From assembly GCF_001194135.2 (NCBI RefSeq), contig NC_069001.1, positions 37,227,090-37,281,016 of the forward strand: DNA of 53,927 nucleotides. The letters run 5' to 3'. Each line of letters opens with the position of its first letter. The stretch's first letter is position 1. Below are positions 17,984 to 53,927 of the stretch, one piece after another. Position numbers and translations under genes: made by a program. This stretch comes from Octopus bimaculoides. Taxonomy: Eukaryota. The notes beneath the pieces were generated by a model that worked only from the letters and a program-made list of their open reading frames with translations, was not told the origin of the DNA and made no database searches.

Positions 17984-18940
17984 ATGGAAAGCAAATTATG
18001 TGAGACACCAATTATGATTAAGACAGAGCCTGAAAGCATTGATTTTCCTGATGAGATGGTGAAAGAGATGGGAAAAACGTCAAATCATTGTGATACCTGT
18101 GGTAAATCATTCACTCGAAGAGGTCCTTTCATTAGGCATAAGTGCATTCAAGTAGAGGAAAAGTCTCATCATTGTGATATCTGTGGTGAATCATTCTCTC
18201 AAAGGAAAGTTTTAACTACTCACAAACGTATTCATACTGGAGAAAAGCCATATCAATGTAATATTTGTGGTAATTCATTTTCTCGAAGTAGAAACTTAAC
18301 TACTCATATACGTATTCATACAGGAGAAAAGCCATATCACTGTGATATATGTGGCAAATCATTTGCTCGGAGTGATCAGTTAAATGTACATAAATACATT
18401 CATACAGGAGGGCAGCCATATCACTGTGATATCTGTGGTAAATCAATGTCTTCAAATAGTAAATTAACAATACATAAACGCTTTCACACTGGGGAGAAGC
18501 CATTTCAGTGTGATATCTGTGGTAAATCATTCTCTATTAGTAGTCATTTAACTACTCACAAATATATTCATACAGGAAAGAAGCCATATTGCTGTGATAT
18601 CTGTGGTAAATCATTCTCAGTAGGAAGTAATTTAACTACTCACAGGCGAATTCATACTGGAGAAAAGCCATATCACTGTGACATCTGTGGCAAAACCTTA
18701 TCTGATTCAGGTAACTTAACCAGTCACAAACGTATTCATACAGGAGAGAAACGATACCTCTGTGATATCTGTGGTAAATCATTTTCTCACAGTGGACATT
18801 TAACTGCACACAAATGCATTCACACCGGAGAGAAGTCATATTGCTGTGATATCTGTGGTAAATCATTTTCTCGTAGAGAAGTATTAACTGTACACAAACA
18901 TATTCATATAGGTGATAAGCCATTAAACTGCAATGTTTGA
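17984..18940 (+). CDS. C2H2 zinc-finger protein Z3: 10 fingers (first lacks the final His), truncated by a TGA at a Cys codon
   Basis: 318-aa ORF with leader [21 protein letters not shown]. Confidence 0.85.
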
Positions 18941-19422
18941 AGTAAATCATTTGCTCTAAGTAGTCAGTTAACTGTGCACAAATACATTTATACAGGTGGG
19001 CAGCCATACCTTCATAATATTTGTGATAAATCAATGTCTTTAAATAGTAAATTAACAATATACAAACACTTTCATACTGGAGAGAATCCATTTCACTGTG
19101 ATATCTGTGGTAAATCATTCTTGATTGGTAGTCAGTTAACTACTCACAAACACATTGATACAGGAAAAAAAGCCACCTTGCTGTGATATCAGGCAAATCA
19201 TTTTCTGACCCAGGTAACTTAACAAGTCGCAGGTGTATTCATACAGGAGAAAAGCCACATTCCTGTGATATGTATACTATATTGTTTTCTCATAGAGATA
19301 TATTAACTAGACACAAGTGCATCAATTTGGGAGAGAACCCATATCATTGTGATATCTGTGGTAAATCATTGTCTCAGAAATAGCACTTCATTGTCCATGT
19401 ATCTATTCATACAGAAGAATAA
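18941..19422 (+). pseudogene. Decayed C-terminal zinc-finger block of Z3 (about 6 relic fingers)
   Basis: Relic helices ALSSQL, SLNSKL, LIGSQL, SDPGNL, SHRDIL and SQK*HF, with a frameshift and lost Cys/His residues. Confidence 0.85.
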
Positions 19423-20579
19423 CTGAGTCAATGTATTTAAGTTGTGGTGGTAAAAAAATATCTAACCATAGATATATATTTACAGAAGGTAGACAAACCT
19501 ATCTTTCGAAATTATATTTTATGTAACTCCAACTAACATTTATATTCATGTCTTATTGCATTGATATTTTTAAGAAAAGTACTGTTTTGGACCTAACATA
19601 TTTCCTGAAAGAAAGGCAAGATACAATTAATTTATTGGACATTGTGGGTAAATAACTAAGGAATGTTTTCTCATAAATCAGAGATAACATCACCGTTCAG
19701 TTATTATGTTAGAAATAAAAATTGCAAATGATGAAATATATTTCATCATAGCATTTTGGAATAAAAATGTAATGTCTTATGTACATTCTTTGTCTTTTAT
19801 ACATTTGCTCATGATGATGGCAACATGGCTACTTGTCATTTCCATATAAATATCTTGATTCGTTTGTGTGCCACTGTATCATTGCTCTTTGCTTGCCCCT
19901 GACCTGTGTATTCTACCCACATGCCTTGTCTCACTGTGTTATTGCCATCTGCTAGCTCCCAGCCTGGGTATTCCACTCGTACGTAACAAGAAAACTTTCT
20001 CCCACAAACCAATTTACATCTCTTTCTCGCATTTCTTCCTTCATTCACTATGCCTAGCTCTCACTTCCCAATTGTGTCCTCACACTCCTGTTCATTGCTA
20101 TCCAGTAGCCCCTCCAACTCTATATATACCCAGGTCTTTCACCACCTACTTTCACTCTTTAATCGCACTCCCTTTGCAATATCCTGTCACTTATATTATG
20201 GCATTTGAACCTCAAGGGTATGCTCTGGCTCTTGCCACTATCTATACGTCTCTCTTCCTTTACTCAACCATCTCATTTATATTCTGATACCCAATCCTTG
20301 TGAGTATGCATGACATTTTGCCACCATCTCCATCCTGCAGTCTCCCACTCTCTCTTGCACTTCCCTCAGGTTGGGCAACCGTGTATTTCCTTTGTGGTAG
20401 CACACCTGTTTCCGTCTTTAATCCTGATCTTTCTCTCTCCGGCCAGGTAACTTTGTACTTCCTCTACAGCAAGACACCTGTATCTGTTTCACTATAATCT
20501 TTTTATCATCACCTCTTCCAATGCCACCTCCCCTCTTAAATTTTTTTTTTTTGCAAGTACTTGGTGACCCTGTCAGTAC

Positions 20580-20850
20580 AGATGCCACTTAAAAGCTCCC
20601 AGTCCACACTGTGAAGTGATGTCATAGGAGAGAAATGTGTCCGCATGGATGATGGTGCACTTGCTTTTAATGAGTCTGCAAAGAAAGAGGCTTGGAGATG
20701 CCATTATGAAAGACTGCTGAATGTGGAGAATGAATGGGATGTGGAGAGTCTGCTGCAAATGTTGACCCAATCGAAGGACCAGCTATCCAAATTGACAGTA
20801 CCCTAGTAGATAAAGCAATTAATCCGGCCCATCAGGAATCACCGCTGAGA
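20580..20850 (+). mobile_element. RTE LINE fragment (EN-RT linker)
   Basis: HYERLLNVENEWD..GPSGITAEML-like translation. Confidence 0.7.
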
Positions 20851-20924
20851 TGCTTAATCTGCTGTTGTTATTAACTTCTATTGGAAAAAAATTTAGGAAA
20901 ATGTTACATAGGTTTAAAGTTTAT

Positions 20925-24980: not shown

Positions 24981-26168
24981 ATGGAAAACACATTATGTGA
25001 CAAATCATTTACGCTTCAGACAGAGTCTGAAAACATCAATTTTGCAGATAAAATGTTGAAAGGGACAGGAAAAGCATCGAACCATTGTGATATCTGTGGT
25101 AAATCATTCGCACACAGGAACTCTTTAACTGCTCACAAACGTATTCATACAGGGGAGAAGCCACATCGGTGTAATATTTGTGGTAAATCATTTATTTCAA
25201 GTTGTCACTTAACTACTCATATACGTACTCATACAGGAGAGAAGCCTTATCACTGTGATATCTGTGGTAAATCATTTGCTCATAGTACTCACTTAACTGT
25301 ACATAAATATATTCATACAGGAGGGCAACCATACCATTGTGATATCTGTGGTAAATCTATGTCTTCAAACAGTAAATTAAAAGTGCACAAACGCTTCCAT
25401 ACAGGAGAGAAGCCATTTCAGTGTGATATTTGTGGTAAATCATTCTCTATTAGTAGTCACTTAACTACTCACAAATATATTCATACAGGAGTGAAGCCAT
25501 ATCACTGTGATATCTGTGGTAAATCATTCTCTGTAGGAAGTAACCTAAATACTCACAAACGACTTCATACAGGAGAAAAGCCATACCACTGTGACATCTG
25601 TGGCAAAACCTTATCTGATTCAGGTAACTTAACTAGTCACAAACGTATTCATACAGGAGAGAAACGATACCTTTGTGATATTTGTGGTAAATCATTTTCT
25701 CACAGTGGTCGTTTAACTACTCACAAACGCATTCACACAGGAGAAAAGCCATATCACTGTGAAATTTGTGGTAAAGCATTCACTACCACAGGTGAAGTAA
25801 CTGTTCACCAACATATTCATACAGGAGACAAGCCATATTCATGTGATATCTGCGGTAAGTCATTTCCTCGTAGAGAATCATTACCTATTCACAAACGCAT
25901 ACATACAGGTGAGAAGCCATATCGCTGTGATATCTGTGGTAAATCATTCACTGTGTCAACTACTTTGACTATACACAAACGCAGTCATACAGGAGAGAAA
26001 CCATATCACTGTGATACCTGTGGTAAATCATTCACTACAACAAGTTACTTAACTAAACACAAACACATTCACACGCGAGATACGCCATATCACTGTGATA
26101 TCTGTGGCAAATCATTTTCTCAGAAACGTCATTTCACTGCCCATGCATTGGTTCATACAGAAAAGTAA
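24981..26168 (+). CDS. C2H2 zinc-finger protein Z4: 13 fingers
   Basis: 395-aa intact ORF with ATG start. Confidence 0.95.
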
Positions 26169-29055: not shown

Positions 29056-30066
29056 TGAAATCGGTCTTCGAACACAAACTGTACTGTATTAATTTTAGCA
29101 AAATTTGTTGAACAAACGGCAGTATTTCGCACGTTATTATATATATGCATACACTTACACGCAGAGCGGACGAAATTTTCTCTTCAACAACGAGGTATTT
29201 TTATTGACTTTTCAGTGTTTCTTTCAGCAAAGCAATGTGGTCTTCTGCTTGACTCGTCATTTATGACGAATTTACACCGCAGAAACTCTCACAACAGTAG
29301 AACTGACCTCGGGCTATAAACAACGATGAGTGACCTGCTTGGATAGAACCGAATGTTATCGACATCTATTGTGTTGTTGAATATATATGTTAGACAATGT
29401 GATAGTGCTATATCTTAACTGGACGTTTCTATTAATATTGTTTTGGTTGTTTCGTCATGGCCAGTTACGGGCCTTGTGAAGCCTGTAATTTACTTACTCT
29501 TTCGAAAGCAAGTTTCTGTAGGTTAATACAATAGAAAAGCGTTGTACTTTGCTTAAAGTATTGTGATACAGAAAGTAAAGTAACAATGCAGAAAGCCAAT
29601 CATCAGAAGCGCACGGTTTAGAAATGCGAGTTTGTGTAGATCCCGCGACTTTGATGACTCTGACCACCCTTTAAATGACAGAATCTGCATAGATTCACAT
29701 TTGTCAACAGCTTCGTTCTTAAGATGGACCTTCGTGCCTGCGTTATATGAAGGTTACTCAACTTCCACTGTTCACATTTTTAGAAGTCCTTCGTTTTTTA
29801 TTTTATATTAGGTATGTTACACAATAGCCACGTGAAGCTATAATTTGTATACATGTAGACTTTATCGTTCAGTGATTGATGCAAATGTTTATATCTACAG
29901 TTTAACCAATATACAAGGGTGGAAATTTTTCTGCTGTTGAATATTCAGCTTCTCCTATATCTTACACCGTTTCTCTATTATTTCAGATATAACATGGTAT
30001 CTGCATAAAAGATTTTTTTTTCTTTAAGATTCATCGTTAATTACTTAAAAACTGCGATTATCATAT

Positions 30067-30380
30067 NNNNNNNNNNNNNNNNNNNNNNNNNNNNNNNNNN
30101 NNNNNNNNNNNNNNNNNNNNNNNNNNNNNNNNNNNNNNNNNNNNNNNNNNNNNNNNNNNNNNNNNNNNNNNNNNNNNNNNNNNNNNNNNNNNNNNNNNNN
30201 NNNNNNNNNNNNNNNNNNNNNNNNNNNNNNNNNNNNNNNNNNNNNNNNNNNNNNNNNNNNNNNNNNNNNNNNNNNNNNNNNNNNNNNNNNNNNNNNNNNN
30301 NNNNNNNNNNNNNNNNNNNNNNNNNNNNNNNNNNNNNNNNNNNNNNNNNNNNNNNNNNNNNNNNNNNNNNNNNNNNNNNN
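30067..30380. other. Assembly gap (N run) covering the Z5 start codon
   Basis: N characters. Confidence 1.
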
Positions 30381-31493
30381 CCAAAAGAAACAGGAAAAAA
30401 GTCAAATGAGTGTGATATCTGTGGTAAATCATTTGCACACAGAAACTATTTATCTGCTCACAAACGTATTCATACAGGGGAGAAGCCACATCAGTGTAAT
30501 ATTTGTGGTAAATCATTTATTTCAACTGGTCACTTAACTACTCATATACGTACTCATACAGGGGAGAAGCCATATCACTGTGATATCTGTGGTAAATCAT
30601 TTGCTCGGAGTCATCAGTTGACTGTACATAAATACATTCATACAGGAGGGCAGCCATTTCATTGTGATATCTGTGGTAAATCTATATCTTCAAAGAGTAA
30701 ATTAACAGTACACAAACGCTTTCATACTGGAGAGAAACCATTTCACTGTGATATTTGTGGTAAATCATTCTCTATTAGTAGTCACTTAACTACACACAAA
30801 TATATTCATACAGGAGTGAAGCCATATCACTGTGATATCTGTGGTAAATCATTCTCTGTAGGAAGTAGCCTAAATACTCACAAACGACTTCATACAGGAG
30901 AAAAGCCGTATCACTGTGATATCTGTGGGAAAACATTATCTGATCAAGGTAACTTAGCTAGTCACAAACGTACTCATACAGGAGAGAAACGATACCTTTG
31001 TGATATTTGTGGTAAATCATTCTCTTACAGTAGATGTTTAATTGTTCACAAACGCAATCACACTGGAGAAAAGCCATATCACTGTGAAATCTGTGGTAAA
31101 TCATTTGCTACCACACGTACAGTAACTGTTCACCAACACATTCATACAGGAGATAAGTCATATTCATGTGATATCTGCGGTAAGTCATTTCTTCGTAGAG
31201 AATCATTACCTATTCACAAACGTGTGCATACAGGTGAGAAGCCATATCGCTGTGATATCTGTGGTAAATCATTCTCAGGATTAACTAACTTAACTCTTCA
31301 CAAACGCAGTCATACAGGGGAGAAACCATATATCTGCGATACCTGTGGTAAATCATTCACTACAACAAGTTACTTAACTAAACACAAATACATTCACACA
31401 CGAGATGTGCCATATCACTGTGACATCTGTGGTGAATCATTTTCTCAAAAGCGCTATTTCACTGCCCATGCATCAATTCATACAGAAAAATAA
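30381..31493 (+). CDS. C2H2 zinc-finger protein Z5: 13 fingers, 5' end hidden in the gap
   Basis: Open frame from the gap edge ([16 protein letters not shown]...), in frame with the listed 30618 ORF, whose start is only a TTG. Confidence 0.85.
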
Positions 31494-32129
31494 CTGTGTC
31501 AATGTATGATGTGCTATGAAAAATATCTAACCATAAATGTATTCATATAGACGGAGGTAGACAAATTTCTCAAGATGTAACAACTAATATCTAGAGTTTT
31601 GAATGGCATCTGCCAACATTAAGTAGGATTCTGAGCCCTGCCCCCGCTCCCGAAACAGCTGTTGGACTTTAAATTTTGGTACATTAATGTAGTTTTCCAA
31701 GCTGAATTGCTGGAGATATTTCTCTTTTTCCAGGAAAGTTTTGAAAAAAAGTTATAGAGGTTTAAAGTTGGATCGTTTTCACTAAGTCAGGAAACAGGAT
31801 TTAGAAGCTGACATTTTGTGTATGATGGCACATCCTGACAACATCCTGAAAATGGCACTCATGCTTTTATATGACACCATAAACAAATCAATTACACACA
31901 ACATATAACTGCTCATAACCTTGTTTAGAATTTTCAGACAATTTTTGCCAATGTGTATTCTACACGAGAATTTGTACGATTATATGCAAAAAAAACCCAT
32001 TTTGGTGGTGCTTCCTTTAAGGCCTTTTTAGCACACCTGACAACCAACGCAATGACAAAGAAACGACTAAACAACACATATTTTGTAGTTTTAAGCATTC
32101 AATATGCATTTAATGTAATAGACAGCACA

Positions 32130-32700
32130 TTACAAATTAAATATTTTTTAAAATATGAAATTTTAACACGAACTTCTTTACGCGTTCTTCCAGTGTGTCA
32201 TGATTCCAACATGGCACCACATAAAGAAAAACTTGTCTGGTCTCGCAACACACTCCTCCAAAAAACCCACTGCTTATGTAGGATCCTTGCTCAGTTGTAC
32301 TTACTTCTTGAAAAGACTGTTTCATCAATCTCAACAATCGTTGCAGGACCACCAATCTCAACTAGATGACAGAGCAGGTCCTCTGCATGTACTTCCCTAA
32401 CATAGCTGTTATAGCCAAAAGCTGTGCAATGGGCTCATCCCCAGTTATTCAACACAAAACCGGATTGAAGTCAATTCCTTACCCCATGAGTAAAGGAAAA
32501 GCACAAGAGTCTTAAGAGGAAGGGTGCTACTTTCAATCCATGTGTCTTTCCTCACTGACACAGACTCCATGCATCCTTGATGTGAGTATCGGCAATACAT
32601 ATTCCCACCAAGTTTTCTTGTACTCGTAAAATGCTTCTCCATTTTCCATAATTTTCTGTGGGGTATAACACCCTTTTCTGGCAAATACAAAACCACATCT
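32130..32700 (-). mobile_element. Merlin-type (IS1595/ISXO2-like) DNA transposase relic
   Basis: SVRKDTWIESSTLPLKTLVLFLYSW, then VEIGGPATIVEIDETVFSRSKYN*ARILHKQWVF/GGVCCETRQVFLYVVP; one stop and frameshifts; the C-terminus appears deleted. Confidence 0.85.
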
Positions 32701-34375: not shown

Positions 34376-34915
34376 GCAGGGTACCACTACCCTTCTTTAG
34401 TAGTACCTGATGTGTGTGTTACACAATAGCCATGTGAAGCTGTAATTTGTATGTATGTAGACTTTACACAACGTTGTATCATGTAATTTTAAAAATCAGT
34501 TAAACTTCACTGTTCAATGATTGATGTAAATGTTTATATATACAGTTTATTCAATATAGAAAGATAATTTTCTGCTGTTGAATATTGAGCTTCACCTCTA
34601 TCTTATGTTTCTCTATTTCAGATATAACAGTATCTGCATAAAAGAATTTCTTTTTACTTTAAATTCACCATAATTTATCATCTAAAGACTGGGATTATTG
34701 AATTCTAATTTTTTTCTACTTCACTGTCTCTAATATTTTCAGGAATAATTTGAATACTTTATTATACTTGGACACTTTTTCCAAAGGAGTTTCTACCATC
34801 TTCAGAAATCAACAGAGATTGAAGGAAATCTCTTTCAGGAATTAGTGAGAAACTAAAAGTTATGGATAATACATTATGTGAAAATCCATTTACACTTCAG
34901 GCATAGTCTGAAAAC

Positions 34916-35965
34916 ATGAATTTTGCAAATGAAATGCCAAAAGAGACAGGAAAAAAGTCAAATGAGTGTGATATCTGTGGTAAATCATTTGCACGCAGAA
35001 ACTATTTAACTGCTCACAAACGTATTCATACAGGGGAGAAGCCACATCAGTGTAATATTTGTGGTAAATCATTTATTTCAACTGGTCACTTAACTACTCA
35101 TGTACGTACACATACAGGAGAGAGGCCTTATCACTGTGATATCTGTGGTAAATCATATGCTCGTAGTAATCAATTAACTGTACATAAATACATTCATACA
35201 GGAGGGCAGCCATTTCATTGTGATATCTGTGGTAAATCTATGTCTTCAAAGAGTAAATTAACAGTACACAAACGCTTTCATACTGGAGAGAAACCATTTC
35301 ATTGTGATATTTGTGGTAAATCATTCTCTATTAGTAGTCACTTAACTACTCACAAATATATGCATACAGGAGAGAAGCCATATCACTGTGATATCTGTGG
35401 TAAATCATTCTCTGTAGGAAGTAACCTAAATACTCACAAACGACTTCATACAGGAGAAAAACCATACCACTGTGATATCTGTGGGAAAACATTATCTGAT
35501 CAAGGCAACTTAAATAGTCACAAACGTACTCATACAGGAGAGAAACGATACCTCTGTGATATTTGTGGTAAATCATTCTCTGATAGTAGGTCTTTAACTG
35601 CACACAAACGCAGTCACACTGGAGAAAAGCCATATCACTGTGAAATCTGTGGTAAATCATTTGCAACCACACGTACAGTAACTGTTCACCAACGTATTCA
35701 TACAGGACACAAGTCGTATTCATGCGATATCTGTGGTAAGTCATTTCTTCGCAGAGAATCATTATTTATTCACAAACGCATACATACAGGTGAGAAACCA
35801 TATCACTGTGATACCTGTGGTAAATCATTCACAGTATCAACTACTTTGACTACACACAAATGCAGACATACAAGGGAGAAACCATATCACTGTGATATCT
35901 GTGGTAAAGCATTTTCTCAAAAACGTCACTTCACTGCCCATGCATCTACTCATACAGGTAAATAA
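34916..35965 (+). CDS. C2H2 zinc-finger protein Z6: 12 fingers; the ancestral ATG at 34862 is interrupted by TAG at 34904
   Basis: 349-aa ORF from an internal Met; the upstream 14 codons align with the Z4 leader. Confidence 0.75.
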   Translation: MNFANEMPKETGKKSNECDICGKSFARRNYLTAHKRIHTGEKPHQCNICGKSFISTGHLTTHVRTHTGERPYHCDICGKSYARSNQLTVHKYIHTGGQPFHCDICGKSMSSKSKLTVHKRFHTGEKPFHCDICGKSFSISSHLTTHKYMHTGEKPYHCDICGKSFSVGSNLNTHKRLHTGEKPYHCDICGKTLSDQGNLNSHKRTHTGEKRYLCDICGKSFSDSRSLTAHKRSHTGEKPYHCEICGKSFATTRTVTVHQRIHTGHKSYSCDICGKSFLRRESLFIHKRIHTGEKPYHCDTCGKSFTVSTTLTTHKCRHTREKPYHCDICGKAFSQKRHFTAHASTHTGK

Positions 35966-37956
35966 CTGTGTCAATGTATATTGTGCTGTAAAAAATACCT
36001 AACCATAAATGTATTCACAGAGGGAGTTAGAGCTATCTTTCTAGACTATATAGTTCATGTAACTACATTTAATATCTACATTCATGAAATGACTTCCCTG
36101 TTTGATTATGATAAAGGTATTGTTTCAGAAAATAGTCATATGTATATTGTAGCTAACATACATGTCCCGAGAGATGACAATATACAATATATTTACTGGA
36201 TATTGTGTAAGTAACTGAGAAATGAATTCTTATAAATCATGAATAACATCACTGTACAGTTAAATTAGAAATAAAATTATGAACAATAAAAGAAAATTAT
36301 ACCACATTGGGATGTAAGTATGATGTCTTATATAGAATCTTTGTCTTTTATGCAATTAATCATGTCAACATGTAAATGAGATTTTGGATGATGATGATGA
36401 TTATTTCAGCAAAATAATAATTATGAATATTCAACAAAGAACTGAAACACATGAATCTAGGATAAAAGTGTTGGGATAAAATATTAGTGTCCTGTGTTGA
36501 TGTAGGGAGATTTGGTTACTATTTCTTGCATATTGTTGTTTCACTTTGAGGTCCATCATTTATTGTGTGAGCTAAGAATTGTCTGTCAGCTGTTTGCCAT
36601 GTATCAACACATACACACAGAAGAAGGAAATGTATTTAAAAAGTTTCATATGTCTGAATGGAGTGAAGGAAGAGGCTTTGGGAAAAAAAGTATTTGAAAC
36701 AAAATTTTTTGTTTTTTTGTCTGGAATTGAAATCGTCTGCACATGGAATTACAAAATAATGAAATAAAGACTTGTGAGGTGACAGTGGGAATTGAAATTT
36801 CAAAATGTTTTTTTTTTTATTTATTGACATAATCATAAATTTTAATATTGAAAATAAGAATCCTAATTGCATGGGCAAATGTCTTCTATAATTGCAGGCC
36901 AAGTGGATTTGATAAATGAAACTGAAAGTGGCTTTAGTATATACATATACACACACACACACACATATCATCATTGACTTATTATGTGACAGACTGAATT
37001 TATTGAGGCTGATTTTCTATGGCCACTTACACTTCCTGTAGCTAACTTGCCTATTTCCAAACAAAGTAATATTTCTCCATGGCCAGACATGTTTTCGTAG
37101 AATATTGGAAATAAATGACACTCATTTACCACATGATGTCTAGAGAAGAAAAGGCAAACATTGACATCATCGTTTAACATCTGTTATCCATGCTAACATG
37201 GGTTGGAGAGTTTGCAGGGGAGGCACTAGGCTACATTGGATGATTTAGCATGGTTTCTGTGACTGGATGCCCTTCCTAACACCATAATATATGTACTTGT
37301 TTATGTATAAGCAGTTTTATTTGCACTAAAGTATATGGACTGGATAGTTTGTACAGCTGGATGTACTTCCGATCACTAATCACCTTACAGCATGTACTGG
37401 TTGCTGTTTTTGTGCCACCAGCACTATTGAGATTGTCATGAAGTTTGGAATGTTACAAACCCTTAAAAAGGGGTGTTGGCTTTATACTAGAGGATGAGGG
37501 GTTAAAGTATGAGAAAGCATGGTGGGCAGAGTAGACTCTGAAAATGGAGCCGCATGGTTACTCACACTTAAAAGATTAGGTGAGAATGATCAGTAGAAGC
37601 TTGAAGGAGATAGCGTTGATGTGGTGTCAAGGCAGGTCATTCATTGTACAAGGTAAGTAGAAGTAGATGGATTGAGTGGTGATTTGCAATGTTATATAGG
37701 GGCCATGAGACCAAAGGAGAGGCAGGCAACAACAGTAAAGACTGCTTATATCTGAAAAGTTGGAGTGGAAGGTAGAATATTTATGATTATAGAAGTTCCT
37801 AAACTTCTTTTACACATGGTGCACCTTACAAGTCAAAACATTTTGGCCCAAACCTCACAGAGGCAATGACTAGTGATCAAGACCTTTGGCTATGTGCTCT
37901 ACTTAAGGGGTCCCTTAAGTGCGCCCACACTGGTAGCACATAAAGAAAAAATCAAC

Positions 37957-39460: not shown

Positions 39461-40599
39461 GTGTAAGTTTACATTTTAGGCTTCTGCATATTGAGTAAGG
39501 CCATTTCCCCGAGGACACCAGGGTCTAATCTTAAGGAAAATTTTATAAGGGTTTAAAGTTTGATTATTTTTACTCAATCAGAAAAGATTTGAAGACTGGC
39601 ATTTTCTGCATGAAAGCAAAACTTTAAGATGATGAATTTTTATCAAACAAAACATTACGTCAATGAATGTCCTAAGATACTTTGAAATTTTAATAAGTTT
39701 TAATGAATGAAGTCACGAAACGGTTGAACAGCCATGTAAATGATTTAAAAAGGAAAAAAATCCTCAACGAAATTTTTTGACATACTGCAAAAGAAACTAC
39801 GTTAATATTGGGGTTTAGGGTCAGTCTGACAAGTGGATGACCTGGGGTTAATCAATTGGTAACATTTTTCTAAAATTCCTCTCTGAAAACTTTTTTTGAC
39901 AAATTATAAAAAAAAAATTAATAAATAAACTTAAAGAAACTCTACGTTAGGCATGTAAACATGAACTGAACTGAAACTACAGCCTAACGTGTTTGAATTT
40001 TCGCTTTAAAAGATGTATAGTTTACTGTAAAGCGAAAATTCAAAAACGAAAGTCAGTATATGAGTGCTCGTTAAAGAAAATACACGTAGTAGTTGTGGTA
40101 GTGTTAAACAGACAATAGCTTCGCTTGTTACTATACAAACAGGCACCAATGTGTTGGATGCTTTCCAGTCGCTGAAATTATTTGCAAAATTTAAAAGCTA
40201 TTGAGTTATTATTAATTTAATTAGCATACAAAATTGAAGCAAATACGAAAACAACTGGAACAAAATTTTAAAAAATAGAAAACTGTAGCAGCAATAGAAA
40301 AGATCTGGACTCCTTTTGATTTGCAATTTAATTTTCTTCATTATTTATTTCTTGGGGAGAAAATGAGTGCAATTTTTATCATCAGCCTGTAAAACTACAT
40401 TTTCTGGAGATTTGAACGACTTATAGTGTTTCGTTGAAATTGAACATCAGAACCACTAGAAGCAGATGCAAGAAACAACTACAACATATCGACAACGATC
40501 GTTGAAATTGGATTCATTATCCGTGTTACAACTTGTGAATACCCAAAAGCGGTGTCTTTCATCTGTTTAGCATCTCATTCCACTGCTAACATTCTGCCA

Positions 40600-40621
40600 A
40601 TGCGCATGATCAACCGGAAGT
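40600..40621 (+). promoter_or_regulatory. ATGCGCATG-ATCAA-CCGGAAGT motif of Z7, with adjacent CCAAT
   Basis: Conserved motif; donor at 40856, acceptor at 42069-42070, uORF at 42080-42094. Confidence 0.6.
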
Positions 40622-41068
40622 TGACTTCGACGTTCACTCATCAGATGCCAGCTTTGTATTACGAATTGAATCGCATATGTATATAAGATAATTTATTAGC
40701 TTGACGCATAAAGCAGTGAAGAATTAATCATATTTATCTCATATCTTCTAATGAATTTATCTATAATGTTATACATTGTATATACGCAATGGGAGTAATT
40801 TCAGCATCCTGACCATCGTCACTGATTTGCTCTTTATAGCTGTGATTCATACGAGGTATTTTTGTTGATTCTTTTCTCATTCAAACGTCGTTTCTACTTT
40901 CACAACGCCTCTATTTGATTGATCTGTCATATATTTCGCGACATTCTTGAAAACAATCAGTCTTTGAAACACAAGTCTGCACAGTTAGCACTGACGTAGG
41001 GATATAAACAACGTCATATCACTTTTCAGGCCAGAGAACTGTCACCGTCCACTATTGTGTGTTCACCA

Positions 41069-42376: not shown

Positions 42377-43558
42377 ATGGAAAATACATTACGTGAGACC
42401 CCAATTAAAACAGAGTCTGAAGGCATTGATTTTCCTGATGAGATGCTGAAGGTGATGGAAAAAACATCATACCACTGTGGTATATGTGGTAAATCATATT
42501 CTGAGAGAGGAACATTGACTAAACACAAACGTATTCATACGGGAGAGAAACTGTATCAGTGTAATATCTGTGGTAAATCATTCATTTCAAGTAATTACTT
42601 AACTATTCATATACGCACTCATACAGGAGAGAAGCCATATCAGTGTGATATCTGTGGTAAATCATTCGCTCACAGTTCTCATTTAAAAGTCCATAAATAC
42701 ATTCATACAGGAGGGCAGCCATGCCATTGTGATATCTGTGGTAAATCTATGTCTTCAAAGAGTAAATTAACAGTACACAAACGCTTTCATACTGGAGAGA
42801 AACCATTTCATTGTGATATTTGTGGTAAATCATTCTCTATTAGTAGTCACTTAACTACTCACAAATATATGCATACAGGAGAGAAGCCATATCACTGTGA
42901 TATCTGTGGTAAATCATTCTCTGTAGGAAGTAACCTAAATACTCACAAACGACTTCATACAGGAGAAAAACCATACCACTGTGACATCTGTGGGAAAACA
43001 TTATCTGATCAAGGTAACTTAACTAGTCATAAACGTATTCATACAGGTGAGAAACGATACCTCTGTGATATTTGTGGTAAATCATTCTCTGATAGTAGGT
43101 CTTTAACTGCACACAAACGCAATCACACTGGAGAAAAGCCATATCACTGTGAAATCTGCGGTAAAGCGTTCAGCACCACACGTCAAGTAACTGTTCACCA
43201 ACATATTCATACAGGAGACAAGTCATATTCATGCGATATCTGTGGTAAGTCATTTCCTCGTAATGAATCATTATTTGTTCACAAACGCATACACACAGGT
43301 GAGAAGCCATACCACTGTGATATCTGTGGTAAATCATTCACAGTATCAACTACTTTGACTACACACAAACGCAGTCATACAGGAGAGAAACCATATCACT
43401 GTGATACCTGTGGTAAATCATTCACTACAACAAGTTACCTAACTAAGCACAAACTCATTCACACGCGAGATACGCCATATCATTGTGATATCTGTGGTAA
43501 ATCATTTTCTCAAAAACGTCACTTCACTGCCCATGCATCTACTCATACAGGTAAATAA
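42377..43558 (+). CDS. C2H2 zinc-finger protein Z7: 13 fingers
   Basis: 393-aa intact ORF with leader [19 protein letters not shown]. Confidence 0.95.
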
Positions 43559-43919
43559 CTGTGTCAATGTATATGGTGCTGTAAAAAATACGTAACCATA
43601 AATGTATTCACAGAGGGAGTTAGAGCTATCTTTCTAGACTATATAGTTCATGTAACTACATTTAATATCTACATTCATGAAATGACTTCCCTGTTTGATT
43701 ATGATAAAGGTATTGTTTCAGAAAATAGTCATATGTATATTGTAGCTAACATACATGTCCCGAGAGATGACAATATACAATAAATTTATTGGATATTGTG
43801 TAAGTAACTGAGAAATGAATTCTTATAAATCATGAATAACATCACTGTACAGTTCAATTAGAAATAGAATTATGAACAATAAAAGAAAATTATACCACAT
43901 TGGGATGTAAGTATGATGT

Positions 43920-44493
43920 NNNNNNNNNNNNNNNNNNNNNNNNNNNNNNNNNNNNNNNNNNNNNNNNNNNNNNNNNNNNNNNNNNNNNNNNNNNNNNNNN
44001 NNNNNNNNNNNNNNNNNNNNNNNNNNNNNNNNNNNNNNNNNNNNNNNNNNNNNNNNNNNNNNNNNNNNNNNNNNNNNNNNNNNNNNNNNNNNNNNNNNNN
44101 NNNNNNNNNNNNNNNNNNNNNNNNNNNNNNNNNNNNNNNNNNNNNNNNNNNNNNNNNNNNNNNNNNNNNNNNNNNNNNNNNNNNNNNNNNNNNNNNNNNN
44201 NNNNNNNNNNNNNNNNNNNNNNNNNNNNNNNNNNNNNNNNNNNNNNNNNNNNNNNNNNNNNNNNNNNNNNNNNNNNNNNNNNNNNNNNNNNNNNNNNNNN
44301 NNNNNNNNNNNNNNNNNNNNNNNNNNNNNNNNNNNNNNNNNNNNNNNNNNNNNNNNNNNNNNNNNNNNNNNNNNNNNNNNNNNNNNNNNNNNNNNNNNNN
44401 NNNNNNNNNNNNNNNNNNNNNNNNNNNNNNNNNNNNNNNNNNNNNNNNNNNNNNNNNNNNNNNNNNNNNNNNNNNNNNNNNNNNNNNNNNNNN
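43920..44493. other. Assembly gap (N run)
   Basis: N characters. Confidence 1.
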
Positions 44494-45861
44494 GGGATCT
44501 AGTTTTTTTTTTCATTTGCAAAATTTGCATTTTTTAAAAGATAGTAAAAAATCTGAAAATCAGCTATAATAAAGTTTTCCAGTGTAATTGCTATGAAGGT
44601 ATGATGTTTTGGAGGGAAAAGTTTCAGAGGTTTAAAAAAAACAGGGTATCTATAGCCAATAGTGAGACAGAAATTTTCTGTTTAGCGAAGCAGTGTCAAC
44701 TTTAAGGTGAAATTTATAGTTTATCGTCTGCGAAATGACCTCTTCATTCCAGGTTTCTAAATAAATAGAAATACCTAATTAAATCAACATGTATAATCTT
44801 ATAGCTTCTTTTTCTCTTCATTGATTGTATGTTTTTATTATTTTTAAAATTTATATTAATATATTTGTCTGCATGTGTTTACTTTATGCATATTTCAGTA
44901 TTATGTATACCCGTCCTGTATTTGTGTACATTATTAATATATAAGTGCGTACGTGTGTGTCCGTGAAAAAGAGGCGTCTGTCTCCAAAACTTGAAAGTTG
45001 AGTAAAGTTTTCATGTTAGGATTTGTAAACTACGGTAAGAATAATACTGGTCAACAAAGAATTTGTCCCCCCAAAATAATACCTGTTTTTGCATACAGAA
45101 TTCAAAAATAATGTCAAATTATCTGTATTAAGTTCATAAATTCCATTCACCTTCATAATGCCAAGAAAATTTATAAACGTCGCAAACTACTTTTGCTATA
45201 TACGTAAAATATCATGACAATTGACAAAAACATCTATAACAAAATTCTAATTGATAAATATAGATTTTTATTAAAACAAAAACTACGTGGGTGAAGTAAT
45301 TCTCGTGGTGTGCAAAATCAACACGTGGGTGAAACAACGCAACTTGCGGTTGTCATGGTAACAAGCTGTTAATGCCTCGCTGTCTGCTGATTGGCTAAAA
45401 TTACCCAAATTTCCCAACTTTGATTACAAATAACATCAGATTTTTTAATTTACGAGATAAAATAATTGGTTGGTCGTAATCAAAATTCAGAATTGCATTG
45501 ATACACCATAATTTGAAGCAAAATAAAAGGTGGCTCATTTTGCGAACGAGAAAGACTAGATCCATGTTTTTGAAGTGAAAGTTCAGTATGTTAGTGCTTG
45601 TTAAAGAAAATATCCGTTGTGGTACTATTAAGCAGACAATAGCTTCACTTGAGAAAAATGAGTGCGATTTTCGTCATCAGTATGCAAAGTTACATTTTCT
45701 GAAGATTTGAATGACTTATAGTGTTTGGTTGAAATTTAACATCAGAACCACTAGAAGCAGATGCAAGAAACAACTACAACATATCGACTACGATCGTTGA
45801 AGTTGGATTCATTATCCGTGTTACAACTTGCGAACACCCAAAAGCGGTGTCTTGGGCATTC

Positions 45862-47202
45862 ATGTGTTATTTCGTCTGTTTAGCATCCCATTCTGCCAAT
45901 GCGCATGATCACCCGGAAGTTGACTTCGACGTTCACCCATCAGATGACATCTTTATATTTAAAACAGAGTCTGAAAGCATTGATTTTCCTGATGAGATGC
46001 CGAAGGTGATGGAAAAAACATCATACCAGTGTGGCATATGTGGTAAATCATATTCTGAAAAAGGAACATTGACTAAACACAAACGTATTCATACGGGAGA
46101 GAAACCATACCACTGTAATATCTGTGGTAAATCATTTGCTAGAAGTAATGACTTAACAATACACAAACGTATTCATACTGGTGAGAAACCATATCACTGT
46201 GATATCTGTGGTAAATCATTTGCTCACAGTTCTCATTTAAGTGTCCATAAATACATTCATACAGGAGGGCAGCCATACCATTGTGATATCTGTGGTAAAT
46301 CATTCACTGCAAAGAGTAAATTAACAGTACACAAACGCTTTCACACTGGGGAGAAGCCATTTCAATGTGATATTTGTGGTAAATCATTTTCTATAAGGAG
46401 TCATTTAACAACTCACAAATATATTCATACAGGAGTGAAACCATATCACTGTGATATCTGTGGTAAATCTTTCTCTGCAAATAGCCAATTAACTATACAC
46501 AAACGCATTCATACAGGAGAAAAGCCGTATCACTGTGATATCTGTGGCAAACCATTGTCTGACCCCCGTAACTTAGCTAGTCACAAACGTATTCATACTG
46601 GAGAGAAACGATATCTCTGTGATACTTGTGGTAAATCATTTTCTCACAGTGGACAATTAACTGCTCACAAATGCATTCATACCGGAGAAAAGCCATATCC
46701 CTGTGAAATCTGTGGTAAATCATACTCTGTCAAAAGTGAATTAATAGTTCACAAACGCATTCATACAGGAGACAAACCTTATTCCTGTGACATCTGTGGC
46801 AAGTCATTTCCTCGTAGAGACACGTTACCTATCCACAAGCGCACTCATACAGGTGAGAAGCCATATCACTGTGATATCTGTGGTAAATCATTCACAATAT
46901 TAAGTAATTTAACTATCCACAAACGCAGTCATACAGGGGAGAAGCCATACTGTTGCGATATCTGTGGTAAATCATATACTACATCAAGTGGTTTAACTAC
47001 ACACAAACACATTCACACAGGAGTGAAACCATATGCTTGTGATATCTGTGGTAAATCATTTACTGTTACAAGTACCTTAACTAAACATAAACGTATTCAC
47101 ACAGGAGAGAAACCATATCATTGTGATGTTTGTGGTAAATCCTTCACTTCTACAAGTAGCTTAACGAAACACAAACGCATTCACACACGAGATATGCCAT
47201 AG
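45862..47202 (+). CDS. C2H2 zinc-finger protein Z8: 14 fingers; start uncertain (ATG 45862 or 45997)
   Basis: Open frame; the listed 45847 start is GTG; the ancestral MENT.. start is deleted; TAG at 47200. Confidence 0.75.
45899..45920 (+). promoter_or_regulatory. ATGCGCATG-ATCAC-CCGGAAGT motif of Z8, fused almost directly to the coding exon
   Basis: 45650-45958 aligns with 40360-40660 upstream of Z7. Confidence 0.6.
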
Positions 47203-47280
47203 CACTGTAATATCTGTCGTTCATCATTTTCTCAGAAACGTCACTTAATGGCACATGTATCTATTCATTCAGAAGAATAA
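47203..47280 (+). pseudogene. Relic terminal finger of Z8 behind a premature stop
   Basis: HCNICRSSFSQKRHLMAHVSIHSEE* is in frame after the TAG. Confidence 0.85.
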
Positions 47281-49858: not shown

Positions 49859-50062
49859 TGCATTAGCACACTTCGATCTACACATAATTTTTCTTTTTTT
49901 TTACTCCAGCCGCAGCTTGAAATTTTTTTTTTTTTTTGGCGGTTCAACAAGTTTGTCTGTTGTCGGCATACTTAACATTTCACATTTTTTTTTTCCTCCA
50001 CAGAGGAAGTATTCATTTTAAACAAAAATTAACTAAAATGGGCAACTCACCCCCCCCCCCCC

Positions 50063-50251
50063 NNNNNNNNNNNNNNNNNNNNNNNNNNNNNNNNNNNNNN
50101 NNNNNNNNNNNNNNNNNNNNNNNNNNNNNNNNNNNNNNNNNNNNNNNNNNNNNNNNNNNNNNNNNNNNNNNNNNNNNNNNNNNNNNNNNNNNNNNNNNNN
50201 NNNNNNNNNNNNNNNNNNNNNNNNNNNNNNNNNNNNNNNNNNNNNNNNNNN
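50063..50251. other. Assembly gap (N run)
   Basis: N characters. Confidence 1.
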
Positions 50252-50279
50252 CACCGTCTGCCACACGCAGAACATCACA

Positions 50280-50301
50280 ACGCGCATATTCAACCGGAAG
50301 T
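50280..50301 (+). promoter_or_regulatory. ACGCGCATA-TTCAA-CCGGAAGT motif of Z9
   Basis: Conserved motif; donor at 50668, acceptor at 52800-52801, uORF at 52811-52825. Confidence 0.55.
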
Positions 50302-51157
50302 GGAATCCGGCCTTCGGCTACAAACGTTACCCCTGTTCTGCGGTGAGTTTTTGACCCATTGAAATTTTTCAAATTTATTTGTTTGATGCATAAGCTAACA
50401 AGTCATATTTATCTCATGTGCTATAATATATTTATATTCAATATTGTAACACACACACACACACACGCATATATATATAATTATGACAGAAAAGGGAAAT
50501 AATGAAAGCTTCTAACAATGCAGACAGTTTTACAAAAAATGTTTCTATTTCGGGCGCAAAAGTATATCTTTAAAAGAAAGCAATCCAAGATATGTATACA
50601 CACAGTAATTTTCTCCAATAGCACGACCACCATTCCTAGTTCCTAAAAAAGCTGTGATTCATACGAGGTATACTTATTGGGTTTTTTCTCATTGAAACAT
50701 CGTCTCTACTTTCATCACTGTAATGTGTCTTACATGATAATCTGTTATAAAACGTGTTACTTTAAAACAAACTGACTTCTTTGTCAAACAGGATTGACCT
50801 ATGACTGAACAACCACAGATTGCTTTTTCTGGACATAGGGGCTAATGTTATCGTCCTTTGGTGTGTAGTTAGGACAGTATGAGGGTGGAACTGTAATCTG
50901 TGACTTAATCTAGATCTGTCGTTATCGTGTTGATTTCTTATAGTTACTGTCAGTTATGGGCCTTGATAAGGCTTTCTCGAATTTTACTGCAGTTCCCTTG
51001 ATATGTATACACACACACACACACACACACCCAGTAGTCCCCCGGTATTTGCAGGGGTTACGTTTCTACAACACCCGTGAATAATGAAAAACAGCGAATA
51101 TGGGACGCGGTCCATAAAAATGCCTATAAATGTGAAAATATAACGTAATTTATATAC

Positions 51158-51382
51158 TTTTGTTTGTTTCAGTCGTTTGACTGCGGTCATGCCTGAGCAC
51201 CACCTTTAGTCGAGCGAATCGACCCCAGGACTTATTTTGGAAAGACTTCCGCCCCCCCCCCCTTTATTTAGTGGGGACGGGCAGAAGTCTTGCACTTATT
51301 TTTTGTAAGCCTAGTAGCTATTTTGCCGAACCGCTAAGTTTCGGGGACGTCAACACACCAGTATCGGTTAGCAAGCGATGTA
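51158..51382 (-). mobile_element. SINE carrying a 55-bp hairpin insert
   Basis: Matches 14505-14680 except for an insert at 51239-51293. Confidence 0.8.
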
Positions 51383-51589
51383 GTATATAGTGCTTTCGTT
51401 GACATCATAACAGCAACCTATAACTTTTACCTGACGAACTGTCCAACCCATGCCAGCATGGAAAACGGACGTTAAACGACGATGATGCGAATGGCAAACC
51501 GTGAATAAGTGGGGGTACACACACATACAAACAAGGACCTTGTTTCAGGAACGGGGAACAAACCATCTTTTGTCTTTCCTACAGAGCTA

Positions 51590-52310
51590 ATGGAATTCTT
51601 ACATGTCTCTCTACGGGCCAATGTGCATGTTGTAGTTCCATTACTTCAACCCCTTGAATGATTGAATAAATCTTTTCTAAGTATCACTGTCAGTCTAGGT
51701 GGCATGTTGCGTAGTGCCTCACACTGGTGCACGGGGAGCTAAAAAATCTATGCAGCGAAGAAAAATTTCAGGCAACAAAAGTGAAGAAAAATTTCAGGCA
51801 ACAAAAAGTTCTTAAAAGATACCTGGAAGGAAATGTGTTAAAATATCAACACTGTACTGTTTTTGATCATTACAGAGTGCAGTATTTGCAGGTAGTGCAT
51901 ACTGCAATAGCATGTTTGAAAGATTTTTTTTCTTCAGGTTTTAGAAGATTATGAAAAACTGAGCTACATTTTACTCAATGGAAATTTTTGTACTGAAATG
52001 ATCATGCAGTATTCAGAGTTTGATGAATTTTCTTTAAGGAACAATATATCATTTTATAGAAACCATCATAGTGGACCATCTCTTGAGGATCGTCATAAAT
52101 ATTCTGTGAAATGCAACCAGAAGTCCATCATATGTTTACAAATGTTGAGTGATTGCTCAGGTTACTTTGAGTGTTTCCAACCAGTTTTTTGTGAAGCTGA
52201 AAGATTTTTTAGTACTCTGCAGAGTCTCAAAATTTGGCTGTCATCAACCACGATTCAGCAATGGTTGAATCATATTCTAATATGCCACATTCATAGAGAT
52301 GTTTTGAAAA
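51590..52310 (+). mobile_element. hAT transposase relic (C-terminal dimerisation domain) in the Z9 intron
   Basis: CEAERFFSTLQSLKIWLSSTTIQQWLNHILICHIHRD matches the hAT ERxFS..R..M...RL..L motif; upstream QPLE.LNKSF..SLGGML. Confidence 0.8.
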
Positions 52311-53124
52311 AAAAAAAAAAAAGATTAGTTGTGAAGAAGTTGCTAAATTATTTATTGACAGCAATGATACAAAATATAATAAAAGTTCTAAAAGACCATA
52401 TTTTTTTCATATCTGAACTTCATTTGAATATATAAAATTTAATTAACATAAAATTTTACTCATGTGACTGGGTCTGGGAAAGGCATCATAAGCAATATTA
52501 ACATGCTCCTTTAAAAATAACAAATGTTGGTTTGTACCCCTCACATTTTTAAGGCAAATGAGAGACCTATATATATATTAGATGTGTGTGTGTGAGAGAA
52601 AGTCAAAATATGATGCCATAGTTTGTTTTACACAAGGTTGTACAATGCAATTTCAATAATCAGTTGAAATTTAATATTCACTTGTTGACCTCAATGTTTA
52701 TATTTACAGTTTATTAATGTAGAAACGTAGTAAATTTTCCACTATTCAATCTCTGCCTTTAAGTATCTCCTGTCTCTTATACTGTTTCTGTATTGTTTCA
52801 GAAGTAACAGATGACGTTGGTATAAAAGCATTTCTTACTTCAGAACGCATCCTCAATATCTATCACCTATAAAGAAAGACGCTATTCTAAATGAAATTTG
52901 TGTGATATATTTCTTATAAATTGAGGTTATTATATTATCAGCATTCTAAATTTTTCTACTTCACTGTCTGGAATATGTTTGAGTATGATTCGCATTCTGA
53001 TTAAACACGGATAATTTTCCAGAGGATTTCTATCATCCTCAGATATCAAGTAAGAGCGAAGTTGAAGGAGATTTCTTTAAAGGAATAAGGTTAAAATATA
53101 CGAATTGGTGAGAGAAGAACAATT

Positions 53125-53927
53125 ATGGAAAATACATTGAGTGAGACACCAATTACAATTAAGACAGAGATTGAAAGCATTGACATTTCTGATGGGATGT
53201 TGAATGAGATGAGAAAAACTTCAAACTACTGTGACATCTGTGGTAAATCATTTTCTCTAAAGAAATCTTTAACTACTCACAAACGTATTCATACAGGAGA
53301 GAAACCATATCAGTGTAATATCTGTGGTAAATCATTCATTTCAAGTAGTTACTTAACTACTCATATACGAACACATACAGGAGAGAAGCCTTATCACTGT
53401 GATATTTGTGGTAAATCATTTGCTCGAAGTCATCAGTTGACTGTCCATAAATACATTCACACAGGAGGGCAACCGTACCATTGTAATATCTGTGGTAAAT
53501 CAATGTCTTCGATTAGTAAATTAACAGTACACAAACGCTTTCATACTGGAGAGAAACCATTTCATTGTGGTAAATCATTCTCTATTAGTAGTCACTTAAC
53601 TACTCACAAATATATTCATACAGGAGTGAAACCATATCACTGTGATATCTGTGGTAAATCATTCTCTGTAGGAAGTAACCTAAATACTCACAAACGACTT
53701 CATACAGGAGAAAAGCCATACCACTGTGATATCTGTGGGAAAACATTATCTGATCAAGGCAACTTAACTAGTCACAAACGTATTCATACAGGAGAGAAAC
53801 GATACCTCTGTGATGTCTGTGGTAAATCATTTTCTCACAGTGGACAATTAACTGCTCACAAATGCATTCACACAAGAGACAAGTCACATATATGTGATAT
53901 CTGTGGTAAATCATTCTCTATTAGTAG
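53125..53927 (+). CDS. C2H2 zinc-finger protein Z9, partial (runs off the window end)
   Basis: ATG at 53125, [20 protein letters not shown]..., open to the end; at least 8 fingers, with finger 5 lacking its second Cys; not in the ORF track because it has no stop. Confidence 0.9.

Follow-up and report, generated by a model that had tools for sequence, protein, structure and literature searches.

Do neighboring zinc-finger genes exchange blocks of fingers, or has each array changed by mutation alone after duplication? The question is raised by a 53,927-nucleotide (nt) stretch of Octopus bimaculoides chromosome CM046621.1 (assembly GCA_001194135.2), referred to here as the window, which has about 35% G+C and contains three runs of N. 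A regular-expression scan of its six frames found 109 C2H2 fingers in an 84-nt register, distributed over nine zinc-finger (ZNF) genes within 54 kb. Z1 and Z2 lie on the minus strand; the other seven genes, Z3 to Z9, are tandem single-exon C2H2 poly-zinc-finger paralogs, all on the plus strand (Table 1). We consider it likely that tandem duplication and in-register homologous exchange between neighboring paralogs jointly shape this lineage-specific cluster. The original prediction for the locus had proposed that a near-identical core of fingers acts as a platform around which flanking recognition modules are swapped, so that new specificities are generated combinatorially.

The fingers are tandem repeats of the form CX2CX12HX3H, the arrangement that defines Krueppel-type proteins. 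Z4 matches the Pfam family zf-C2H2 over 13 stretches (E = 1.9e-65), and a Pfam scan of Z4 and Z1 reported C2H2-type families only, with KRAB, SCAN, and BTB domains absent. Ahead of finger 1, the N-terminus is about 35 amino acids (aa) long in Z3 to Z9. The cluster is a set of tandem C2H2 paralogs of the octopus genome, and its members are not KRAB zinc-finger proteins (KZFPs).

When the 84-nt units were read in register, the helix of finger 3 (F3) was AHSTHL in Z4, AHSSHL in Z7 and Z8, ARSDQL in Z3, ARSHQL in Z5 and Z9, and ARSNQL in Z6. That of F8 was HSGHL in Z3, HSGRL in Z4, HSGQL in Z8 and Z9, YSRCL in Z5, and DSRSL in Z6 and Z7. All four pairings of an H- or R-type F3 with an HSG- or DSR-type F8 are present: H+HSG (Z4 and Z8), H+DSR (Z7), R+HSG (Z3 and Z9), and R+DSR or R+YSR (Z5 and Z6). 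This readout reproduced exactly the finger table and the four combinations of the original prediction. The four-combination pattern alone could stem from homoplasy. The intervening core fingers, F4 (SS[NKI]SKL), F5 (SISSHL), F6 (SVGS[NS]L), and F7 (SD[SQ]GNL), are near-invariant except in Z8, where they read TAKSKL, SIRSHL, SANSQL, and SDPRNL. Most linkers are HTGEKPY or HTGEKPF; the two that depart from this form, which follow F3 (HTGGQP) and F7 (HTGEKRY), are kept in all seven genes. Positional homology is clear over F1 to F8, with counterparts in different genes 85 to 100% identical versus about 65 to 83% for other fingers; F2 and F6 of Z8 are without a clear best-matching position. The stretch from F3 to F8 is uninterrupted by a gap in all seven genes.

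Recombination among the paralogs

Our main alignment placed F1 to F8 of the seven genes in register (672 nt). The pairwise homoplasy index (PHI) of this alignment fell far below its permuted values and was significant (P ≤ 0.0005) whether computed from all sites, third codon positions, or codons outside the recognition helix; third positions outside the helix gave P = 0.04. A second PHI alignment, of F1 to F13 in five genes, gave P values of 0.0005 overall and 0.001 at third positions. Neighbor-joining trees of separate segments grouped the genes differently. F1 to F3 united Z7 with Z8 (bootstrap support, 99%) and Z4 with Z5 and Z6 (98%), F4 to F6 united Z6 with Z7 (98%), and F7 united Z3 with Z4 (92%). 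F8 separated Z5, Z6, and Z7 (98%; Z6 with Z7, 97%) from Z3, Z8, and Z9 (98%).

Tests for specific exchanges were also significant. A 3SEQ-like triplet walk with 200,000 permutations assigned Z7 to the parents Z8 and Z6 (P ≤ 5e-6; 2e-4 at third positions), Z6 to the parents Z4 and Z7 (P ≤ 5e-6, third positions likewise), and Z9 to the parents Z8 and Z7 (P ≤ 5e-6). In a GENECONV-like test of the longest shared fragment, six pairs of genes were significant, with global P values from 0.0002 to 0.016. Z6 and Z7 had the lowest value, for 54 consecutive polymorphic sites from F4.0 to F7.0. They were followed by Z8 and Z9 (0.004; 14 sites over the HSGQL helix of F8), Z4 and Z7 (0.005), Z7 and Z9 (0.01), Z7 and Z8 in F1 (0.011), and Z4 and Z9 (0.016). 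The mosaicism among paralogs that had been proposed is borne out by segment trees that are incongruent at 92 to 99% bootstrap support and by significant PHI, triplet, and fragment tests, silent sites included; congruent trees with homoplasy from point mutations were not found. Recombination among Z3 to Z9 is strongly supported by these sequences, as far as the assembly can show.

A history without exchange would require point mutations to recur, and selection on DNA-contacting residues to converge, once the genes had been duplicated in tandem; some features of the data fit it. One CpG transition (CGY/CAY) is enough to interchange H and R at helix position -1, and one transversion to interchange H and Q at position 3. 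Contact residues diverge about as much as synonymous sites do, a level that positive selection could produce. In Z4, the tract that resembles Z3 is seen at nonsynonymous sites only, and F3 has His codons unlike those of Z7 and Z8 and is essentially equidistant from Z6 and Z8 (8 and 7 nt, respectively). However, segments conflict significantly when third positions, or sites other than the recognition codons, are analyzed alone. Nineteen informative sites in F1 place Z7 with Z8, whereas F4 to F6, F8, F13, and the noncoding 3' flank place it with Z6 (98 to 100%). No single tree makes Z7 equal to Z6 over 260 nt and yet different from it at 24 of the 84 positions of F1, where Z6 is 2 to 5 nt from Z5 and Z4. 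As a general explanation, a history without exchange is refuted, and we give it hardly any weight; it survives only for F3 of Z4.

Exchange is traced in most detail in Z7, the H+DSR gene. With positions counted from the first base of finger 1, the segment from -71 to -1 plus F1 (155 nt) has 10 mismatches to Z8, 49 to Z6, and 35 to Z9. Over the end of F1 and F2 (positions 76 to 167), Z7 differs from Z8 at 20 of 92 positions and from Z9 at 6 of 90. F3 (168 to 251) is again Z8-like, with 4 mismatches to Z8, 12 to Z6, and 14 to Z9. The order is reversed in F4 (252 to 335), with 9, 0, and 5 mismatches, respectively. Positions 249 to 508 form a 260-nt exact match to Z6. The diagnostic sites on either side of the switch are 24 nt apart, at the 5' boundary of the conserved block. 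Finger by finger, Z6 and Z7 differ at 24, 13, 12, 0, 0, 0, 6, 1, 12, 8, and 5 positions in F1 to F11 and at 1 in F13. A segment that resembles the sequence just upstream of Z8 sits 1.8 to 2.1 kb ahead of Z7, and the intervening 1.75 kb or so is missing in Z8. Judged by its sequence, Z7 is a genuine module hybrid, a recombinant of Z8-like 5' and Z6-like 3' parts. It stands physically between Z6 and Z8, with the 5' side of its downstream neighbor and the 3' side and flank of its upstream neighbor, and this is the arrangement expected of an unequal-crossover duplication product of the "anti-Lepore" type.

Could these mosaics, or some of them, be chimeric joins or gap-fill errors among tandem paralogs that are 85 to 100% identical? 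According to passages of Albertin et al. 2022 (PMC9068888), the assembly is an earlier Illumina short-read shotgun assembly with Hi-C scaffolding. Four N gaps lie in or beside the cluster, Z6 and Z7 carry their exact repeat on the same contig, and the contig that ends in Z9 has an odd, F5-like finger start straight after F8. Less trust can be placed in this contig end. On the other hand, the Z8-like part of Z7 is 92 to 97%, not 100%, identical to Z8, which makes it a distinct sequence and not a set of misplaced Z8 reads. The sites that bracket the switch to Z6-identical sequence fall within one short read. If Z6 and Z7 traded 5' halves over the identical tract, one H+DSR and one R+DSR gene would still result, since both 3' halves are DSRSL, and the signal spans four separate contigs and many gene pairs. 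We consider an assembly artifact an unlikely source of the mosaics.

Mosaic patterns extend to other members of the cluster. Z9 is near Z6 and Z7 over F2 to F7 (0 to 6 differences per finger), and its F8 groups with those of Z8 and Z3; its sequence becomes Z8- and Z3-like where the block ends on the 3' side, near the EKRY linker and F8. Past the gap, Z9 has a Z8-type tail in which the SVGSEL finger is 86% identical to F9 of Z8 and the F11-F12 pair is repeated as in Z8. Z5 and Z6 are 94 to 98% identical in F1 to F7 and 82 to 93% in F8 to F13, and the pattern between Z6 and Z7 is the opposite. Z4 has F1 and F2 like those of Z5 and Z6, an F7 that is 2 differences from that of Z3, and F11 and F12 closest to those of Z7 (3 and 4 differences). 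The Z3-like tract in F7 and F8 of Z4 has 92% bootstrap support in F7 and a triplet P value of 4e-4 at all sites, which is not significant after correction. F2 of Z8 (ARSNDL, 46114 to 46176) is 16 to 22 nt from every other F2, and in its helix it is similar to an F3 of the R type (ARSNQL of Z6). An out-of-register microconversion could have produced this finger, but nucleotide counts favor neither origin (10 matches in 15 either way).

The central block

Silent sites were compared among Z4, Z5, Z6, Z7, and Z9, in which the shared block is F5 to F6 and, less strictly, F4 to F7; the block is uniform at synonymous sites too. Synonymous divergence per finger (pS) was 0.05 in F5 and 0.08 in F6 versus 0.32 in F1, 0.33 in F3, and 0.23 in F8, and the noncoding flanks of the same genes are about 68 to 80% identical. 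Because silent divergence is 4- to 6-fold lower in the core, beyond what constraint on the protein would produce, we infer that the core has been homogenized by conversion. The longest and most significant shared tracts of the fragment test all span F4 to F6. In F1 to F3 and F8, nonsynonymous divergence at helix positions -1, 1, 2, 3, 5, and 6 is 0.26 to 0.46 and equals or exceeds synonymous divergence, and divergence of framework residues is about 10-fold lower (0.02 to 0.08).

Purifying selection on a shared DNA target might be all that keeps the core alike, with exchanges occurring anywhere and breakpoints at the core edges appearing as an artifact of detection. Breakpoints can be placed only where sequences differ, hence at the edges of identical tracts, and patches outside the core do exist (F2 of Z7, F9 to F12, and the F8 helix). 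Such selection, however, does not account for synonymous divergence in F5 and F6 that is severalfold lower than in neighboring fingers and noncoding flanks, nor for the inclusion of F4 to F6 in every one of the leading shared tracts. Selection on the target as the sole cause strikes us as improbable.

Homogenization by conversion also changes how the invariant core is to be seen. The near-invariance of F4 to F7 outside Z8, on which the proposed platform was built, stands. The core is not a passive platform, since its silent divergence is depressed and it is itself a product of conversion. Moreover, as breakpoints are visible only at the edges of identical tracts, the switches observed at the core edges cannot show that a platform caused them.

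The two nonstandard linkers, HTGGQP and HTGEKRY, bracket the homogenized block (for example, at 25317 to 25337 and 25653 to 25673 in Z4). Noncanonical linkers can break up continuous reading of DNA, and on the basis of the linkers, the array may work as three subarrays, F1 to F3, F4 to F7, and F8 to F13.

Origin of the four combinations

The F8 types behave as haplotypes: at residue 8, the HSG fingers have the silent codon TTT in common and the DSR fingers TTC, and the DSR and YSR fingers of Z5, Z6, and Z7 form one well-supported group. The H-type F3 of Z7 and Z8 is likewise a single haplotype. In Z4, the His codons of F3 are CAT...CAC versus CAC...CAT in Z7 and Z8, ACT stands where those genes have TCT, and the alignment contains no silent marker common to this finger and F3 of Z7 and Z8. 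It can be derived from a Z6-like R-type finger by three single-base changes (CGT to CAT, AAT to ACT, and CAA to CAC), no less readily than from a Z8-like one. For the H-type F3 of Z4, a convergent point change would be as good an explanation as a swap. The old, degenerate F3' within Z3 (CTA AGT AGT CAG) is one step from the R-type, a weak hint that R-type F3 may be the older state.

The proposal that the four combinations were produced by swapping modules holds for one of them. Z7 (H+DSR) needs recombination, and the other three need none, since single mutational origins or an ancestral state are possible. R+HSG may be ancestral, and R+DSR and H+HSG can each be explained by one mutational origin. 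In the scheme that we favor, R+HSG (Z3 and Z9) is probably the older state, DSR would have arisen once in the F8 lineage of Z5, Z6, and Z7, and the H-type once in the F3 lineage of Z8 and Z7. Recombination would then have joined the two in Z7, and the H-type of Z4 would reflect either an old microconversion or a parallel substitution. Exchange would take place by unequal crossing-over and by short interlocus gene conversion tracts of about one to three fingers. Conversion would maintain uniformity in the central block, F1 to F3 and F8 to F13 would stay different through relaxed or diversifying selection at DNA-contacting residues, and an exchange that resolves inside the uniform block would reassociate 5' and 3' recognition modules.

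Several observations weigh against this account of the cluster. The locus is known from one short-read-based assembly, and a tract of 260 nt is longer than a typical short read; the linkage of Z6 and Z7 sequence across their identical tract rests on read pairs. The Z3-like F7-F8 tract of Z4 is unsupported at third positions (P = 0.27) and by the fragment test (global P = 0.56). Z1 and Z2, as an outgroup, gave no polarity for the finger types, as clear homology to fingers of the other genes is limited to their F8 and F9 (corresponding to F4 and F5). For Z7, one unequal crossover leaves the unequal identity to its two parents unexplained (98 to 100% to Z6 versus 80 to 97% to Z8), and the gene is patchy in F2, F7, and F9 to F12, so that several events must be assumed. 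We rejected a single unequal crossover as the whole history of Z7 for these two reasons, which imply further, finger-sized conversions.

No orthologous cluster was retrieved from a protein collection whose word-indexed search saturates on ZNFs and which is without the window's own proteins. In a search with full-length Z4, long vertebrate KZFPs dominated, with best identities of 53 to 59%. A padded, 40-aa profile of the N-terminus gave no candidate sharing three words, and a framework-masked Z7 search returned generic ZNFs only. The best octopus matches of the latter, LOC118768538 of O. vulgaris and A0A0L8GU38 of O. bimaculoides, were rejected as orthologs because they are 59 to 63% identical and align in several registers. 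None of seven window ORFs (open reading frames) looked up in a protein cluster collection was present.

A bolder version of exchange would make diversification a built-in property of the cluster, in which a four-finger anchor block between GGQP and EKRY is actively kept uniform to let exchanges resolve within it and the partly disabled copies Z3, Z8, and Z9 donate modules to the intact genes Z4 and Z7. We think it improbable that the cluster works in this way. If it did, templated diversification from pseudogene-like donors would let octopus ZNFs track fast-changing targets, for example, transposons.

Known systems, disabled copies, and neighboring features

Lineage-specific poly-zinc-finger paralogs of vertebrates show conversions detected with GENECONV, changes in finger number, and selection on contact residues (Emerson & Thomas 2009, PMC2604467), and in mouse KZFP clusters, finger-coding segments have been duplicated, deleted, and rearranged (Kauzlaric et al. 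2017, PMC5363842). The octopus cluster is like these in its recent tandem duplicates, its short conversion tracts, its variable finger number (here 12, 13, and 15), and the concentration of changes at DNA-contacting residues. Unlike vertebrate KZFPs, the octopus genes are molluscan, are without KRAB, and have a 35-aa N-terminus in their single coding exon. They differ from the vertebrate clusters also in that a discrete internal block, between GGQP and EKRY, is homogenized while both flanks diverge.

Hemoglobin Lepore and anti-Lepore and the opsin hybrids are hybrid genes formed by unequal crossing-over in tandem arrays. Z7 is like anti-Lepore in that it has the 5' part of its downstream neighbor and the 3' part and flank of its upstream neighbor and sits between both; unlike the Lepore and opsin hybrids, it has unequal parent identities and extra finger-sized patches (F2, F7, and F9 to F12). 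In PRDM9, near-identical fingers within one array shuffle out of register inside the gene. The octopus cluster shares with PRDM9 a reassortment of fingers by recombination that changes predicted DNA specificity. It differs in that fingers within a gene are only about 65 to 83% identical, fingers keep a stable positional homology, and exchange takes place between loci in register. Intra-array minisatellite shuffling of the PRDM9 kind was rejected, since each finger best matches its positional homolog.

Octopus genomes hold well over a thousand lineage-specific C2H2 genes, about 1,800 of them in O. bimaculoides. The window belongs to the same superfamily, and to the same genome, as the expansions with clustered octopus duplicates that are described in parts of Albertin et al. 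2022 (PMC9068888) and Holzinger et al. 2025 (PMC12513265). Holzinger et al. 2025, on cephalopod C2H2 expansions, treat the duplication and expression of these genes and not the way in which their finger arrays diversify; the terms gene conversion, recombination, shuffling, and unequal are absent from the text. The mosaicism of the cluster adds to this work without contradicting it. It provides a statistically supported example of interlocus exchange at work in an invertebrate ZNF expansion, in which exchange can reassociate N-terminal and C-terminal finger modules around a homogenized center. An expected mechanism is confirmed in a new lineage; no new principle is involved, as the process is already known from vertebrates. 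Phylogenies of such families, or scans of the ratio of nonsynonymous to synonymous substitution (dN/dS), will mislead if they ignore recombination.

Table 1. Genes and mosaic tracts of the window (coordinates count from its first base)
Feature	Position	Strand	Details
Z1	2404-3852	minus	six-frame finger scan
Z2	10631-11947	minus	six-frame finger scan
Z3 ORF, 318 aa, truncated at 18940	17984-18940	plus	F3 ARSDQL 18341-18403; core F4-F7 18425-18739; F8 HSGHL 18761-18823
Z3 degenerate tail	18929-19435	plus	stop, then second F3'-F5' copy (ALSSQL with GGQP linker, SLNSKL, LIGSQL), frameshifted remains
Z4, intact ORF, 395 aa, 13 fingers	24981-26168	plus	F3 AHSTHL 25254-25316; core 25338-25652; F8 HSGRL 25674-25736
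Z5, 13 fingers in one ORF, N-terminus in gap	30381-31493	plus	F3 ARSHQL 30579-30641; core 30663-30977; F8 YSRCL 30999-31061
Z6 ORF, 349 aa, 12 fingers	34916-35965	plus	F3 ARSNQL 35135-35197; core 35219-35533; F8 DSRSL 35555-35617
Far-upstream segment of Z7	40048-40660	plus	80-86% identical to sequence just upstream of Z8 (45577-45959)
Z7, intact ORF, 393 aa, 13 fingers, recombinant copy	42377-43558	plus	F3 AHSSHL 42644-42706; core 42728-43042; F8 DSRSL 43064-43126
Z8-like tract of Z7, N-terminal coding part and most of F1	42405-42551	plus	Z7 positions -71 to +75; 6 mismatches/146 nt to Z8 45959-46105
F2 of Z7, Z9-like	42554-42643	plus	6/90 mismatches to Z9; 20/92 to Z8 over Z7 positions 76-167
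F3 of Z7, Z8-like again, H-type helix	42644-42724	plus	4 mismatches to Z8 across F3
Switch in Z7 from Z8-like to Z6-identical	42724-42748	plus	alignment 248-272, GGQP linker/start of F4
F4-F6 of Z7, 260 nt identical to Z6	42725-42984	plus	exact match to Z6 35216-35475
Last finger and 3' flank of Z7	43475-43919	plus	98.2% identical to Z6 35882-36326; homology ends at gap 43920
Z8 annotated ORF, 446 aa, 14 fingers before stop	45862-47202	plus	F3 AHSSHL 46198-46260; divergent core 46282-46596; F8 HSGQL 46618-46680
F8 helix patch of Z8	46641-46676	plus	identical to Z9 53832-53867 at 14 consecutive polymorphic sites, global P = 0.004
Z9, runs into gap at window end	53125-53927	plus	F3 ARSHQL 53398-53460; F8 HSGQL 53809-53871

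Three or four of the seven copies carry what are, by their sequence, disabling lesions: Z3, Z8, Z9, and partly Z6. In Z3, F9 is an F10-type finger, the F9 position being lost, and the last finger of the degenerate tail (19348 to 19410) is broken by an internal stop; the gene resembles a pseudogene formed by fusion or internal duplication. The conserved MDNTL start is retained in Z6 (ATG at 34862) and is followed by an in-frame stop at 34904 to 34906; the annotated ORF of this gene begins at a downstream ATG at 34916. One Z6 finger, at 35807 to 35890, has the F11 helix TVSTTL between ends like those of F12 (CDTC and HTRE), and the gene has 12 fingers, not 13. Compared with Z7, Z8 is missing about 1.75 kb upstream (45577 to 46029 region), including the conserved MENTL start, and a stop at 47200 to 47202 directly precedes an otherwise intact last finger (47206 to 47268). 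In its F11 to F14, the F11-F12 pair occurs twice, a layout that is also found in the Z9 tail past the gap. The ORFs of Z1 and Z2 stop at the same place as that of Z8 (HTRDKP*).

F5 of Z9 has a 9-nt deletion at 53566 (CDI of CDIC) and with it has lost the first zinc ligand Cys. The F5-like finger start that follows F8 in this gene (53893 to 53927) is identical to F5 of Z3 at 35 of 35 positions and runs into a 1015-N gap. That gap begins at 53928, exactly at the window end and inside Z9 right after F8, and the sequence past it resumes with an F5-type linker (VKPYH). The F5-like start would be either an internal duplication or a contig-end artifact.

Three further gaps lie inside the window. The one at 30067 to 30380 is upstream of finger 1 of Z5 and hides about 233 nt in which the Z5 start codon falls. 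Its two sides are collinear with Z6 (29856 to 30061 with 34501 to 34698 on the left; 30381 to 31379 with 34937 to 35935 on the right), and all 13 Z5 fingers are in a single ORF to its right. The gaps at 43920 to 44493 and 50063 to 50251 are intergenic. The ORFs of Z4, Z7, and Z8 match CM046621.1 exactly.

Among the ORFs between the ZNF genes, one of 181 aa on the minus strand, at 7165 to 7710 between Z1 and Z2, was not matched in Pfam and may, from its sequence, be a decayed piece of a retroelement. The intergenic ORFs at 19868 to 20287, 31953 to 32369, and 51998 to 52435 were likewise without a match in the Pfam scan.

Z1 and Z2 are a related subfamily pair in inverted orientation and are 87.5% identical. 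Their F8 and F9 correspond to F4 (86 to 87%) and F5 (82 to 85%) of Z3 to Z9, an offset of four fingers. Differences between the two genes number 12, 9, 3, 3, 6, 2, 3, 1, 8, 8, 12, 10, and 6 in successive fingers, with the center less diverged than the ends.

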